Positions 8,403 through 39,795 of a stretch of DNA of 64,000 bases are shown in pieces. The number at the start of each line of letters is the position of its first letter. Positions within the stretch are counted from its first letter, which is position 1. The notes below the pieces were generated by a model. It had not been told where the DNA came from and did no database searches. It saw only the letters and a list, made by a program, of their open reading frames with translations. Source of the DNA: Amoeboaphelidium protococcarum X5 (taxonomy: Eukaryota > Fungi > Aphelidiomycota); NCBI GenBank assembly GCA_023515725.1, contig JALDTO010000057.1, positions 62,001 through 126,000 of the forward strand, read 5' to 3'. Both the position numbers and the translations under genes were made by a program.

Positions 8403-8819
8403 GATAATTTCTAGATTATAATAATATACCAATCTCCTCCTACGGCAGCTGTTAAGTTTTTAAAGTGGAGAAGCGTTGAATGAATGAAGAAATGATGCGA
8501 AAACAGGGCCGATCTCCTGTTCGTGCACTTCAGAAAGTTTTATTTTGTTTTTTTGGTTCACTTGATGATGGTCCGCTTGTTTCACAAGTATTTTGATATG
8601 TTATATAGCGTTACAGTATAAATGATTCTCATTGAAACTAAACTTAAATCGAAATATTCTCTCTAAACCCACGTCTTTTCCTCAACTAATAACTTACCTT
8701 ATTTGATTTTACGCTGCTAAATATCATCGTTGCAATCGCTCAAATTGATGACTTGTCTCGTCACTTTAATGTCACTGATATTGTTCTGATTCTACATCTG
8801 TAGCACTAATTGTCTGATT

Positions 8820-9260
8820 ATGTATCCAAGTCAAAGAACGTGCGCTATCCATTCCTGCAAAGTAAAGATTCTAGACTAGACGATACTTCCGATTGCTATC
8901 CGTGTGTTCAGAGTACATCAGAAACTCTGATATCAATGACGCATCGTGACGTGGTCTGATACGATGGTGTTAGTGATTGAATCATTCCTGTTGAAATGAT
9001 GCAAGTTGACGCGTTACTTCTCTTCTTGATAAGAAATTGCAAGGATTGTGATATTGTTTGATAATAGAAAGTTGCATTTACATCTTTGGGTGCGTCCCTA
9101 TTGAAACTGTCTCAGTCTTGGCGCTGGTCATTCCATATATTGTCGCGATATTATCAGTGCTTGCATCGTAATGTCATAGAGTTGTTTTAAAGGAGAAGTA
9201 ACTTTGGTTCCAGTTGACCTGGCGGAGTAGATTATTTGCTTGCAATGTGTGATGTCTGGG
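8820..9260 (+). pseudogene. Fanzor pseudogene fragments (N-terminus and RuvC-III end; core deleted)
   Basis: ATGTATCCAAGTCAAAGAACGTG vs ATGTAGCCAAGCCAAAAACGTG at 23568; RDIISACIVMSQSCFKGEVTLVPVDLAEQ vs RDNVGSYNVMSRSFSKEEVKLVTANQADQ (13/29 identical, ungapped); frameshifts and TGA stops. Confidence 0.75.
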
Positions 9261-9578
9261 TGCATATCTTGCTGAATAATATCGCGCTAATTGCAATGTT
9301 TGGTCGCTATATCAAGAAGTATTTCCGTTTGCTAATCATTATTGTTGCATCATACTGTGATTATCTTTGCGTTTTATTGGGTAAATGGAAGATGGCTGCC
9401 GTGCTTAGTACTGCTATGGAGGCGCTCATTGGTACTGCAGATGTTGAAAGGCTTATGCAATGAGTTTAAGCATGGTGTCAGACTAAACTGGTCAAGGCCA
9501 AGGTGATGGTGTCCAGTTGTAATATCAGGTTGAGTTATGGGCTTTGTTACGTCATTGGAACAATTTGAAGATTGCAGT

Positions 9579-9663
9579 TGCTACTACGGGGATATGTGGG
9601 TACCCCGATGAAAAGATCGCCGGAGCTTTTTTAAAGTGTACGAGTGATTGCTGAACCCACATG
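9579..9663 (+). ncRNA. Putative Fanzor omegaRNA scaffold, copy A (guide would follow: ATCGTGAAATATCTG...)
   Basis: 73/85 nt identical, ungapped, to 25909-25993; CGGGG/CCCCG hairpin whose loop ATGTGGG can pair with terminal CCCACAT. Confidence 0.65.
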
Positions 9664-22829: not shown

Positions 22830-23567
22830 TCTTGAATATATATTCTTCTAAAGATTATGTAAAATAAAAACGTGCAAGTAGACTTGGTATTATTTAGAAT
22901 CGCTATTTAGATGAAAAAGGGAGCAGGTGAAGTTTAGGATTTTAGACTGATCGGCTCACTAAGAAAGATTGCCGAGAGATTCAACATGTTCCGCCCGTAA
23001 ATATGCCGACAGACTACCTGCAACAAACACGGTATCCTAGCAACATCATTCTAGTGAATGAAATGACGTTGATAAGCGAAACCCATCAGCATGGCCTCAA
23101 CAGATAGGAATAATTTAATCTATTGGGAGCTGTTTTAAAAGCCGCATTATAATAAGATGACTTCATGGGAATTTCTTCAATATGAACTTTCGAATGAAGC
23201 GAGGCGGGAAAATAGTGGCGGATCAATCATTCGTGCACCAAGTCCTTTTGAAATTTTTTATCCATAAAGTATTTGTATGATAGTTGGTCTTATTTTAAAT
23301 ACGATTATCAATGAGATTCTATATATTTTTACATACTCTTCAATACAAGTCAATAATCTAATTACTCGTTTACTTTATTGCCAATCTTCTGAGCTTGTCT
23401 CAATACCTTAACAATACCAATAACTCCTGAGTGGTTTTAAGCTGCGACCATCCTCATTGATATCACAATGAAATGATGACTGGTCGTGTCACATCTCATC
23501 ATTGCATTGTATTCAATGCTTACTGACAGTGTTCTAATTCTTTCATCGCAATACTGATCATTAGAAA

Positions 23568-25804
23568 ATGTAGCCAAGCCAAAAACGTGAATTATCTGCG
23601 GCTGCAAAGACAGCACTAGAAGATTTCAAAACTTAAGCATATCATCAAGATATTCCCGTATTTCTCTCCGTGTGTGCTAAGGTGATCAATGAGTTGATAT
23701 TCGGATAGTCAAAGAACTTGGCGCATCATCATTTGCCGCATTTGCTCCAGTATTTGCCCCTTGGTATAATACTAAATCTGAATGGTTTGGACATTATGTT
23801 TGGAATGGCAACACAGACGCGTTCAATTAACGACTGTTGTTAAAATGCACTGACAAGGACTGGAAAATACCGTAATCTTAATAAACAGAACACTCCTTAA
23901 CAGCAAAGTTCAATCCTAATTTGAATCGTAAAGACATGGGACAAAACGTAAGTGAGAGCCAGGAGAAGTAAAGTTTTAGTCAGGTGCAGCATTAAATTGA
24001 GAATATCATTGAATCCAAAATGCGGAATCAGTAGATTGCATCAGATACAGACTCTCTAATGGCTAAATGGAAATCTAAGCAGTAATAGTCGTCATCTAAG
24101 AGTTTGAAGAAGAAGAAGAAGAAGAAGAAGAAAGTGCTACAGCTTTCGGAATAATCTCTAGTGGCGTTGGAAAACATGAAACCAAAAATCGGCAAGATGA
24201 AAAATCGGCGAGAGATTGCCGAACTGAATCAGTATGATCAGATACGCTCGATTAATATTCGTATATTCCCTGATAAGAAGTTCATACACAAATTCAATGA
24301 ATGGCTGGATCTCAAGTTTCAAATGGTCAATTTCATCATTAACATTTTGAATGATTCCAGAGATTAAGGAGAAAAGGTGTCAATACAAGCGCTAAGGAAC
24401 CATGTTGCGCTAAGTTAAGTCAAAGCCAAAAAGTGCCGCGTGCCTGATGACGACCCAAGATTGCGTTGGATGCGAATGCCATCTACAGTGCAAGATGAGA
24501 TTATTAATGCGACTCGCACGTATTACTATGCGGCTCATGAGAAGTATACAAAGGGTGATATCAAAGACTACAACTTTATGCCAAATAGAGATGATGATTA
24601 GTTTTAGATGCTCCAGTTTCAAGCGTAAGATGCCCGTGTAGATCCAGATAGCAATCGCGTCCGCCTACTGCCTTCATTCCTCAAGAGCTTTGGGAAACTG
24701 TATGCCAAAGATCCTCTATTCTAAGAGCCTGGCAAGATTGACTACTGGCCCCGTTTCATCAAGTTTGGCTATGGCAGAGGAAGAGAGTTCAAGCTCGTGA
24801 AAAGAAGAAAAAAGTTCTTTGTGATTGTTTCGTATGATGCCTCCTGTATATAAGGTCCATTCACTGATTGGTATTACTAGCAACTGCAAGATATGAATAA
24901 TGCAGATGAGAATCTTGAAGGTGCTAGATCATTTATAAGCCGCCGTGATGCGCGTTGCCGTTAAACTGGAAACACTTGCTCGGTGGATCCAGGTGTTAGA
25001 GTGAGCATGACCGTCTTCGATTTGGATCGCAGGTCATTCATTGCGATTGCGCCTGATTTCAAGTAGCTTTATAAGAATAAGAGTGAATAGATTTCCAATG
25101 CATAGTCTCTGAAAGATTAGATGGATAATCGCGCAGCTGCTTTACAGAATGGACAATTGAGTCTGGAGGAGTTTAAAGCGTAGAAGAAAGAATTATGGCA
25201 CACATGGAAGTAATCAAAGAATAATGTTGTTCCCACTGATATTGGCATTAGTCGTGCTTACACCAAATTCTCTGCATATGTATCGAATTTGCATAACCGA
25301 ATTGGCAACTTTTTGATGCGGCATTATGATCTAATCATTCTTCCCGAGTTTCTGACTATTAAGATGGTGAAGAAACGGAGAAAGCGTTTGAATCTACCTC
25401 CCGTTCTAAGTGATACGGCCGATGTACTGGTAACACACTCGCGTGGTTAATAAAATTCTGGGCATATTCTCCATAAAAATACGCGGAAGACTCTATTGGC
25501 GTTTAGCCATTACAAGTGTCGTATGAAACTTATTGCAATGGCATAAGCTAATATATTTAGATCTGGAAAGTAAGTGCTCGTGACAACGGAGGAGTTTACG
25601 TCGAAACAACATCCGTTTCAGAATGTGCTACATAACTGTCTTGGTGCTGATGAGTACTTCATGTTGGGTGATTTTCGTGCATATCGGGATAATGTTGGAT
25701 CATATAATGTTATGTCTCGAAGTTTTTCTAAGGAAGAAGTGAAATTGGTTACTGCGAACTAAGCGGATTAGACACTATACAAGGAGTTCGTGATGTCCAT
25801 ATGA
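23568..25804 (+). CDS. Fanzor2-like RNA-guided endonuclease (eukaryotic TnpB); apparent frameshift near 23693, in-frame ATG at 23936
   Basis: TGA-free frame 23693-25804 with ~27 TAA/TAG after 23936. Motifs: RSINIRIFPDK; RuvC-I CSVDPGVR (D 24986); LHNRIGNFLMRHYDLIILPEF; FSHYKCR; VTTEEFTSK (25589); RuvC-III RDNVGSYN (D 25688); K9 tract. Confidence 0.88.
24107..24133 (+). repeat. (AAG)8 AAA microsatellite encoding nine lysines in Fanzor (possible NLS)
   Basis: Directly visible, in frame with the Fanzor ORF. Confidence 0.8.
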
Positions 25805-25908
25805 AGGTCTTGCAAGAGACTCTATTGCGCCTTGCTTAACATCTGATCACTAAATCATAGAAGTGTTTTGTAATTGCTTATCGTTATGCTCGTACTATAC
25901 TGTTACTC

Positions 25909-25993
25909 TGCTATTAAGGGGCTATGTGGGGACCCCAATGAAAAGATTGCTGGAGCTTTTTTAAAGTGTACCAATGATCGATTAACCCACATG
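25909..25993 (+). ncRNA. Putative Fanzor omegaRNA scaffold, copy B (guide would follow: TTTCCCGATCCAGAC...)
   Basis: Begins ~105 nt after the Fanzor stop; conserved with 9579-9663; similarity ends abruptly after CCCACATG; hairpin plus pseudoknot potential. Confidence 0.68.
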
Positions 25994-26167
25994 TTTCCCG
26001 ATCCAGACATTACAACTATCTATTCTCACAGAAAGCCGCACTGAAACGTTTATAAGAAGTTGACGCGTTTCTCGATATCCATCTTCAGTTAACTCAGCTG
26101 ACCTGCTACTGAGAATTAAATACTGCCACGGTTTATTACTATTAATTGAATCGCTTAACTATTTAAG

Positions 26168-26893
26168 ATGAATATGCACGATTATTATCCTCGTAACATT
26201 AATCTTAATGACTATGTGCCCAATGATATGAGCACACAGGCTATTTTGACAACTTTCTTTGGTGGTTTCGGTGTAATTGCTCTGGCTGCTTACGTTGCAT
26301 CTGGCTACAGCAAGTATAGAATCTGTCAATGTGATCGCTTGGCTATTGTGTGGTTCGCTCTCTGTGGCTGTATCCATACATTCTTTGAGGGACATTTTGT
26401 GATGAAGGGCTGGAACAACCAGCTCCCTTCCGATATGTCTCTGTTTGGACAGGCATGGAAGGAGTACGCCAAGGCTGATTCCCGTTACATGACTAGCGAT
26501 CCAACTGTGCTCTTTATCGAAATGATTACCGCTGCTCTGGAAGGTCCTGCTAGTCTGTATCTGGTCTATAGTTACATGTACCAGACTCCGGCTCGCTATT
26601 TGCTCCAGCTCTTGGTCTCTGTCGGTCAACTGTACGGGTGTGTAGTGTACTATGCATCTAGCTGGTACCACAACTTTTCAGAAGTTAATCCTCATCCTCA
26701 CTACTTTTGGGGGTACTTTGTTCTCTGCAATCTGCCATGGATCATTGTGCCGATCATGTTGACCGTTGATAGTTGCAAGAAGATTTACACTGCGCTGTGG
26801 GAGAGCAATTATCGCGTTGGCTCTGTTCGTGAAGCAACTATGGCTGACAGTGCCAAGACTGTGGGAACTGCTAAAAGTAAGAAGAAGTTGTGA
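26168..26893 (+). CDS. EBP: Emopamil-binding protein, sterol delta8-delta7 isomerase
   Basis: HDYYP, WFALCGCIHTFFEGHF, QAWKEYAKADSRY, GQLYGCVVY, YFWGYFVLCNLPWIIVP. Confidence 0.95.
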   Translation: MNMHDYYPRNINLNDYVPNDMSTQAILTTFFGGFGVIALAAYVASGYSKYRICQCDRLAIVWFALCGCIHTFFEGHFVMKGWNNQLPSDMSLFGQAWKEYAKADSRYMTSDPTVLFIEMITAALEGPASLYLVYSYMYQTPARYLLQLLVSVGQLYGCVVYYASSWYHNFSEVNPHPHYFWGYFVLCNLPWIIVPIMLTVDSCKKIYTALWESNYRVGSVREATMADSAKTVGTAKSKKKL

Positions 26894-38463: not shown

Positions 38464-39795
38464 ATGTTGCTGTTTTATAATAATAATTGTCGAGGATTAG
38501 TCTTAACAGTGATCAGCTTATTAGTATTATCAACTGCGTAGGTGGAGGCTTTTAATTACTGCACTCCAGATGGGAAAATGTCCGTGTCCACAAAGCCAGT
38601 TGCTAACAATTCACCTAATATGACTTTCGTCATCACATCGAAAGTACAAGGTTGGTGTGCTATTGGACTTGGACAGTCAATGTCTGATGCAGATATCATG
38701 ATGACGTTTGCCAATGGAAAGCGGCTGACTGTGGTGTCTGCGTATTCATCTCAGCGTCAACTTCCCGTGCCGTATGAGTAGCAATACGCGTAAATGCTCA
38801 CTGGATCTACTGCTAACAACGGTCTCTACACTTTTGTGTTTCAGCGTCCGATCAAGGCAGATCAGCCGGGGATGAAGAATATTCAGAATGGTGAAACCTC
38901 TATGATCTGGGCTTATAGTGATGCTGCGATTGATGGCGAATTTAGTACCTTGGGAATACACGCGTCCAAAGGTGTGATCCGAGCTAATCTCTTTAGTGAA
39001 CAGTCTGTAGCAGCGGGACCTGACGCTACATAGTTGGTGCTGGCTCATGCGGCCATGATGATTGTTGCATGGTTTGTGTTTGTGCCTGCTGGTATCTTTA
39101 TTGCTCGATTCCTGAAATCTGCTCTCGGTGTATGGTGGTTCAGATTGCATGCTATCTTGATGAGCTCTGCTGTGATATTTGTCATTATTGGGCTGATTCT
39201 GATTATTGTGGCATTGAAATCTAGCAGTGGTGAAACTTTGGCTGAAGGTGCGCATCCTATTCTGGGCTTTTTTATCATTGCCTTGATGTTGGTTCAATCC
39301 ATATGGGGTGTTGTGATTGATCGTCTATTCGATCCTCTACGCAAATATGTACCTTGGCATGATCAGGTTCACTGGTGGTTGGGACGCGTCGTTTTCATCT
39401 TGGCCATTGCCAACTCAATATATGGTGCCGTTTACTACAAGTTGTTTGATGTTCTTTATGCATGTATCACGCTGATGCTTCTGGCCATTATTGCGCTTGT
39501 GTTTGGTCAAGTCTTCATAGGATAATAGCATCATGTTTAAGATCAGTACAGTGGTTAGCGTGCATCGGACTTTTTGCCTAATATCGAGTCTGTGTCCACG
39601 TACAATAGCGGCAGTCTTGATAAGAGAGACTCACGGCGTAGTACGACTAGATCCGGTATTTACGGTCAGAAGGGCAATAGCTCGTTCTTTGGTGATAACA
39701 GCTACCCAGTACACGGAAGTCAGATATACGAAGGAAATCAGAATGACTCATATAGGGAATCTGAGCACATCCAACAATACTAAGATGATGAATGA
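38464..39795 (+). CDS. DOMON plus cytochrome b561 domain membrane protein
   Basis: Signal/TM; DOMON GWCAIGLGQSMSDADI and MIWAY; b561 AHAAMMIVAW, WWFRLH, HPILG, VHWWLGR; four annotated ORFs in one frame. Confidence 0.92.

Follow-up and report, generated by a model that had tools for sequence, protein, structure and literature searches.

A multicopy mobile element of the aphelid Amoeboaphelidium protococcarum carrying a Fanzor2-like gene that lacks the zinc finger, with a predicted omegaRNA at its right end

In this study, a stretch of 64,000 nt from Amoeboaphelidium protococcarum (the window) was analysed, and a multicopy element carrying a Fanzor2-like gene was delimited in it. The protein almost certainly belongs to the Fanzor2 lineage. 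The element is probably a non-autonomous transposon derived from a fungal IS607EU element that lost tnpA, kept its Fanzor2 OMEGA module and homes by a predicted RNP. Together with relatives from Tilletia, the family made up a Fanzor2 subclade, apparently not described before, that has lost both the zinc finger and tnpA and is still spreading. Judged from sequence, it would work like a Fanzor2 OMEGA system as a member of that lineage; the zinc finger was absent, and the element departed from a canonical IS607EU element. Ghost loci and Fanzor2 genes located outside IS607 elements have both been described already. No paper naming the family was found in the literature covered by the search. The element and its junctions were located as follows:

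23217..25992, + strand: mobile element of 2,776 bp, non-autonomous, present in at least 23 full-length copies
23215..23216, + strand: 2-bp target duplication GT, second copy at 25993-25994, one GT at the empty site (G000:C249)
23209..23215, + strand: RAAAWWG target motif on the left side of the element, where the TAM is predicted
23222..23238, + strand: left subterminal box, imperfect inverted repeat of 25966-25982

The copies were 92.6–99.8% identical to each other (median 99.2%), and 5' truncations were rare. The ORF was full-length in 10 of the 23 copies and broken in 13, and all three catalytic motifs were kept in 22. At a related locus of another contig (G000:C249, 72–87% alike), probably the homeologue, the element was absent and both flanks were joined. 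The right end was precise and the left end was ragged. The base after the right end was G in 34 of 35 junctions, and the base following it was free (A12 T10 G6 C5). At the left junction, duplications of 1–10 bp began at G and often replaced the first element bases nearly in register; a few copies had non-target bases there that matched junctions of other copies. The motif RAAAWWG, for which the anchoring G was chosen by the duplication where one existed, was matched fully at 15 of 20 insertion sites and at each position by 17–20 of the 20, against a background of 0.5% of G's. Apparent tandem copies split by N (G000:C244:154859-160457, C154:389715-394240, C207:599600) were probably scaffolding artefacts.

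The imperfect inverted repeat lay near both ends at unequal distances, as in IS607EU elements. The subterminal boxes covaried in three aphelid families, and a chytrid IS607 element had them as well. Insertion of IS607 takes place at GG and leaves no duplication, and the imperfect inverted repeats of IS607 are unequally distant from the ends (PMC6188088). Therefore, the ends of the aphelid element were taken as IS607-derived and its junctions as not IS607-like: the target was a single G with 1–10 bp duplications in place of a GG crossover without duplication. Terminal inverted repeats with a fixed-length duplication, the mark of cut-and-paste DDE elements and Fanzor2*, were not found at the ends. 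The junctions are best read as a single, precise transfer of a strand at the right end, with a left end that the host would have repaired.

The host was identified as Amoeboaphelidium protococcarum by the names of the NCBI proteins, in agreement with the aphelid origin given in the initial annotation, and host genes lay on both flanks of the locus. The coding region comprised two parts:

23568..23690, + strand: family start codon and first 41 codons, interrupted by a 1-nt deletion at ~23691
23693..25804, + strand: rest of the Fanzor2 ORF in code 6, with the internal ATG 23936 from which the 622-aa NCBI model P0059 starts

As annotated initially, the frame 23693-25804 was free of internal stops in code 6: 703 codons in 23693-25801 held zero TGA (chance ~7e-7), and the stop was at 25802-25804. 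The window's long ORFs were open under code 6 only. The frame contained 31 TAR codons in all, and the earlier count of about 27 was reproduced from ATG 23936 (27). Read in the standard code, the frame broke into stop-free pieces of which the longest had 78, 70, 62, and 60 aa, which corrects the former statement of two fragments of under 70 aa. The ORF of the family was 745 aa long and started at ATG 23568. The A at ~23691 was carried by 21 of 23 copies and by contigs from two other runs and was absent in the window copy, which therefore was frameshifted after codon 41 and read 118 aa from ATG 23568. In a tblastn search with a 743-aa NCBI paralog, the match split at ~23691 in the window copy. 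The window copy would probably contribute no more than a guide or a protein shortened at its N-terminus. TAR made up 58% of the Gln codons in the family. The share was 54% for host ORFs and 23% for a Fanzor1 family resident in the same genome. Since the share in the Fanzor2 family was near that of host ORFs, unlike that of the Fanzor1 family, the long residence in this host proposed earlier was supported. The downstream host gene at 26168-26890 (EBP/sterol-isomerase-like by eye) had 1 TAR codon, and the element lay ~175 bp upstream of it.

The 78-aa stop-free piece was compared with 1.8 billion representative sequences, which gave 30 proteins; the closest were hypothetical proteins of Amoeboaphelidium protococcarum. 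NCBI held a cluster of 31 hypothetical proteins translated in code 6, including members of 743–745 aa and the window's own 622-aa model, so the family protein was public but had no name. NCBIfam profiles found nothing on the family protein. The Pfam zinc-ribbon PF07282 missed the family, yet matched ~40 other loci in the genome; PF01385 was reached by a C-terminal paralog below the cut-off only, and no family profile passed its cut-off. The family was hidden from family profiles mainly by the loss of the zinc finger. The description of the gene as cryptic was overstated, since code-6 translations of the family already existed at NCBI; mining by profiles misses the family. Little was gained by Pfam searches with the stop-free pieces and a single-sequence PDB search, and the ESM Atlas returned generic TnpB-like or unnamed clusters only.

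The lineage was determined by profile and structure comparison. The following residues and tract were assigned in the protein (numbering of the 745-aa protein):

24986..24988, + strand: RuvC-I Asp of DPG, D474, aligned with D324 of ApmFz2 (PMC11832414)
25343..25345, + strand: Pro in the canonical RuvC-II Glu position, P593, almost invariant (PMC10530073)
25589..25591, + strand: relocated RuvC-II Glu, E675, aligned with E467 of ApmFz2 (PMC11832414)
25688..25690, + strand: RuvC-III Asp, D708, aligned with D501 of ApmFz2 (PMC11832414)
24107..24133, + strand: poly-Lys tract, 4–22 K among copies, probable NLS by analogy with PMC10530073

A clade profile searched against the PDB matched the mimivirus Fanzor2 9B0L (ApmFz2) with E=6e-38; the next match was at 7e-10, and no Fanzor1 was matched. 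An AF2 model (pLDDT 77.7) was made for P0050, a full-length paralog in which 613 of the last 622 residues equal the window protein. Its best Foldseek match was 9B0L (E=8e-12). VIA gave Z 15.2 and rmsd 5.3 over 408 residues for 9B0L, with the N-terminal extension included; ISDra2 TnpB was a close second (Z 14.3), and the Fanzor1 GtFz1 reached Z 7.2. The top rank of 9B0L in profile, Foldseek, and VIA, the distance to Fanzor1, and the nesting of the family among tnpA-linked relatives in the tree agreed with the Fanzor2-like assignment in the initial annotation, and a TnpB-like REC-WED-RuvC fold was thus present at a eukaryotic genomic locus. The six motifs listed there were located at 24245, 24980, 25334, 25502, 25580, and 25685, and the K9 tract at 24107. 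The replacement of the canonical RuvC-II Glu by Pro is a substitution described in PMC10530073; both it and the relocated Glu were found as annotated, and E675 was the sole invariant column in an alignment of 39 sequences. The triad residues D-E-D were present, but the word intact did not fit the frameshifted window copy.

The C4 zinc finger between RuvC-II and RuvC-III, which is part of Bao and Jurka's motif, was absent here:

25610..25684, + strand: degenerate zinc-finger region, all four Cys gone in the alignment

The loss was common to aphelid subfamilies A and B, Tilletia, and one metagenomic protein, which formed one branch (support 96/94). This branch was nested in a clade of chytrid and metagenomic proteins (support 100/99), in a tree whose only named Fanzor reference was one host Fanzor1. 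The chytrid and Tilletia relatives (KAJ3300409.1, CAD6944024.1, others) belonged to the same clade as the aphelid family at 25–29% identity. The chytrid relatives shared the pseudoknot topology of the aphelid family and, unlike it, retained the C4 finger and tnpA; the Tilletia relatives had lost the finger as the aphelid family had. In chytrid loci, the N-terminus of the Fanzor overlapped the IS607 tnpA in a different frame; no trace of tnpA was seen at the aphelid and Tilletia loci. At L057:2900-3500 and L058:2550-2950 (chytrid), the Fanzor2 N-terminal region was overprinted on tnpA, and the homologous stretch was retained in the tnpA-less aphelid protein. The relatives L067 and L068 lay on metagenomic contigs densely packed with genes, including BTB, KilA-N, F-box or ankyrin genes, which suggested large DNA viruses as carriers. 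The protein of subfamily B (L056 / L060, G000:C179:334124-336337) was 49% identical; one full-length copy was seen, at the same site in two strains, with the ORF open in both. A TnpB/Fanzor-like ORF at G000:C179:251068 (L050) had the zinc finger and lacked the relocated RuvC-II Glu.

The protein without the finger could be an RNA-guided binder or nickase and not a double-strand cutter; its role would then be to occupy or mark empty sites or to control transposition. This is an unlikely explanation, suggested by the loss of all four Cys across the subclade, by the contribution of the ZnF to the active-site region in ApmFz2 (PMC11832414), and by the survival of the near-matching empty site at C249. 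The three catalytic residues were nevertheless conserved in aphelid A/B and in Tilletia even though synonymous sites were saturated, and the finger region was modelled as ordered in P0050 (pLDDT ~78–90). It is moderately probable that intact copies cleave DNA as the predicted nuclease.

The right end of the element was then considered as a source of RNA. The features below include a decayed sister element in the same window:

25918..25993, + strand: compact omegaRNA scaffold core of ~76 nt, delimited by covariation; the actual 5' end may be located further upstream
25994..26008, + strand: predicted guide in the unique right flank, by analogy with PMC10432273 and PMC10711439
8506..9662, + strand: ghost copy, a decayed and internally deleted sister element with both ends and the omegaRNA core kept

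A pseudoknot was recognised in which the loop 25923-25930 of the stem 25918-25936 pairs with 25986-25993, and the final U-G pair uses the fixed flank G. The middle stem 25945-25979 folded in all three aphelid families. Subfamily B kept the pseudoknot pairing although both partners had changed in 4 of 8 pairs; the pairing was also kept, with yet other letters, at two loci each from chytrids and metagenomes, which amounted to covariation over six loci. In the pairing control, 1 of 100 shuffles scored equally well. The pseudoknot scan recovered none in Tilletia, Rfam had no match to the core, and the MFE z-scores of the 3' region were not significant. The RNA of Fanzor2 and TnpB has a pseudoknot and that of Fanzor1 does not (PMC11832414); in IS607 reRNAs, the right-flank base is fixed and built into the scaffold (PMC10711439). 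The pairing pattern makes it very likely that the right end encodes a Fanzor2 omegaRNA, with binding by the protein predicted; the candidate omegaRNA of the initial annotation gained support from the covarying pseudoknot in aphelid, chytrid, and metagenomic relatives. The right flanks were unrelated among 33 copies, and the empty site at C249 had 2 mismatches in 15 to the guide of the window copy.

The ghost copy at 8506-9662 matched element positions ~2-515 and 2450-2774 by nhmmer (E down to 1e-20) and had no Fanzor protein signal left. The ghost family was 1.15–1.18 kb long and represented a deletion derivative keeping both ends and the scaffold. A full-length Fanzor copy with a ghost-type left end (L023, G000:C142:714946-717719) indicated recombination between the families. 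Another ghost copy (L030, G000:C214) was interrupted by 2 kb of inserted DNA, probably a further DNA transposon, which had terminal inverted repeats and a target duplication.

Three RNA-like runs were available as contigs only and were not recorded as RNA; such contigs cannot show RNA ends or true levels. In these runs, the multicopy ORF had a depth of 5–26, from ~23435 in all, against 1,200–2,000 for the neighbouring single-copy gene. The very deep coverage of the host gene 26168-26890 was seen in the same kind of runs. A contig over 25918-25980 had a depth of 1,000–1,600, but its letters were ghost-type and not those of the Fanzor family. These contig-only runs of unrecorded type suggest that the Fanzor family is transcribed in a related strain. 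Retrotransposition was considered and rejected as unlikely: the RNA-like coverage began ~215 nt inside the element, yet the copies kept full left ends.

Selection was compared between old and young copies. Older subfamilies were under purifying selection (pN/pS ~0.3–0.4); between subfamilies A and B, synonymous sites were saturated and pN was 0.35. Young copies drifted neutrally (pN/pS ~1). The many broken copies and this neutral drift would fit a dead relic, with the ORF and RNA fold as passive cargo of a MITE-like element. That reading is very improbable given the 10 full-length copies, the selection between subfamilies, and the covarying pseudoknot within the element end, and copies of transposons normally drift neutrally once inserted.

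In the favoured model of a transposon that homes by its Fanzor2 RNP, intact copies would make a 745-aa nuclear protein that binds RNA from the right end of the element. The pseudoknot would close on the fixed flank G, and ~15 nt of flank would serve as the guide. The RNP would recognise an A-rich TAM ending in G (~AAWWG) together with a guide match, which is the empty allele. It would cut this allele, and repair would copy the element back; such restorative homing is described for TnpB (review PMC13565253). Ghost copies would give extra guides in trans, and new insertions would be made by a trans-acting enzyme. The absent zinc finger, the 13 broken copies of 23, and the persistence of the near-matching empty site at C249 counted against this explanation. 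So did the pN/pS of ~1 among young copies, the negative search for an IS607 transposase with three queries, and the RNA-like runs, which were not recorded as RNA and whose abundant 3' contig had ghost letters.

The enzyme for new insertions was searched for. None of the element's reading frames encoded a serine transposase, and none was found in the genome with NF033518, PF00239 or the TnpA of the closest relative; the controls matched for the two families, and parts of the genome may be missing from the assembly. It is a tentative possibility that a serine transposase of IS607 type moved the element in trans and is now lost from the strain, unassembled or too diverged. The subterminal inverted repeats and fixed G inherited from IS607EU relatives (PMC6188088) and a left end that starts with GG are consistent with it. 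The failure of the three queries in the genome, the absence of a GG target (second base A12 T10 G6 C5), and duplications as long as 10 bp (IS607 makes none; PMC6188088) argue against it. Serine-recombinase mismatch repair was rejected as the source of the ragged junctions, since it predicts that G is overrepresented two bases beyond the right end, which was not seen.

A HUH Rep enzyme of Helitron2 or Replitron type that mobilises the element in trans is a comparably tentative explanation. Precision at one end, a fuzzy other end, and seemingly parent-derived bases match the Chlamydomonas elements CRe-1/2/3 (Helitron2-Fanzor1, PMC3627910) and Replitron-1 (PMC10288648), as do the orientation of insertion and the variable duplications by a fixed motif; those elements differ from the aphelid one, with its rare 5' truncations, in nuclease clade, target motif, and end structure. 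RepHel genes were present in the genome. However, the one RepHel locus, out of four, that could be read to its ends had different ends and was merely nested in a ghost copy, and the 3' hairpin beyond the subterminal repeat was absent from the aphelid element. Its target was A-rich then G, not T-rich as in Helitron2/Helentron elements. The RepHel at C207 was accordingly dropped as a partner sharing the right end, being a separate element with its own ends. This Helentron-like RepHel (G000:C207:35816-43309; L063, L055, L033) had HUH and PIF1 helicase domains with a frame break near 38550, palindromic subterminal repeats, and a 3' hairpin, and short relatives of its 3' end occurred elsewhere.

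Spread with no transposase, in which the Fanzor RNP and host repair select or open new sites, is rather improbable. It would accord with the lack of a partner, with the sharp 7-nt target motif at the expected place of a TAM, and with duplications whose first base is that of the protospacer and which take the place of left-end bases almost in register. Against this, new right flanks were unlike existing guides (mean identity 0.264 vs 0.260 shuffled), no integrase chemistry is known for the Fanzor family, and other DDE or tyrosine enzymes of the host remain candidates. Guide-directed choice of new sites was rejected because the flanks were unrelated. There is equally little reason to expect that the RNP picks the RAAAWWG site and that host repair or a borrowed Rep enzyme yields the junctions, with no transposase of the element's own family. 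If true, Fanzor-picked RAAAWWG sites would mean RNA-guided-nuclease-assisted transposition in a eukaryote, and the same reading would address an open question on Chlamydomonas Helitron-Fanzor elements. The remaining probability fell to other host enzymes that mobilise the element.

The element was compared with known systems. The aphelid protein shared with ApmFz2 (9B0L, PMC11832414) the fold and N-terminal extension, DPG, the relocated Glu, and the D-E-D triad. The two differed in length (745 aa vs 520 aa) at 16% identity, and the aphelid element lacked the zinc finger and tnpA. The pseudoknotted right-end RNA and the fixed G after the right end were as in Fanzor2 of IS607EU elements (PMC11832414), whereas the single-G, A-rich target with variable duplications differed from the clean GG junctions of IS607EU. 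Fanzor2* (cut-and-paste capture in Chloropicon and molluscs, PMC10711439) also spreads without an IS607 transposase and has a flank base in the scaffold; unlike Fanzor2*, the aphelid element had no terminal inverted repeats or fixed-length duplication, and its ends were still IS607-derived. The Spu-1 Fanzor1 (PMC10432273) is likewise multicopy and transposase-free, with ORF-less ghosts that keep the omegaRNA, but it is a Fanzor1 with terminal inverted repeats and an RNA without a pseudoknot, whereas the aphelid protein is of Fanzor2 type.

The family offers an exceptionally complete natural data set of 10 full-length genes, ~40 right ends, a TAM-predicting motif, a ~76-nt scaffold core, ghost guides, and an empty site. 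It bears on whether Fanzors need a zinc finger for cutting and on the way in which Fanzor elements without a transposase are mobilised.

The genome also contained a second Fanzor family with multiple copies, which was of the Fanzor1 type (L041-L049, e.g. G000:C154:217828-220989). Its zinc finger was intact, and it ended in TA as a Mariner element does. With TAR at 23% of its Gln codons, this family was concluded to have arrived more recently.
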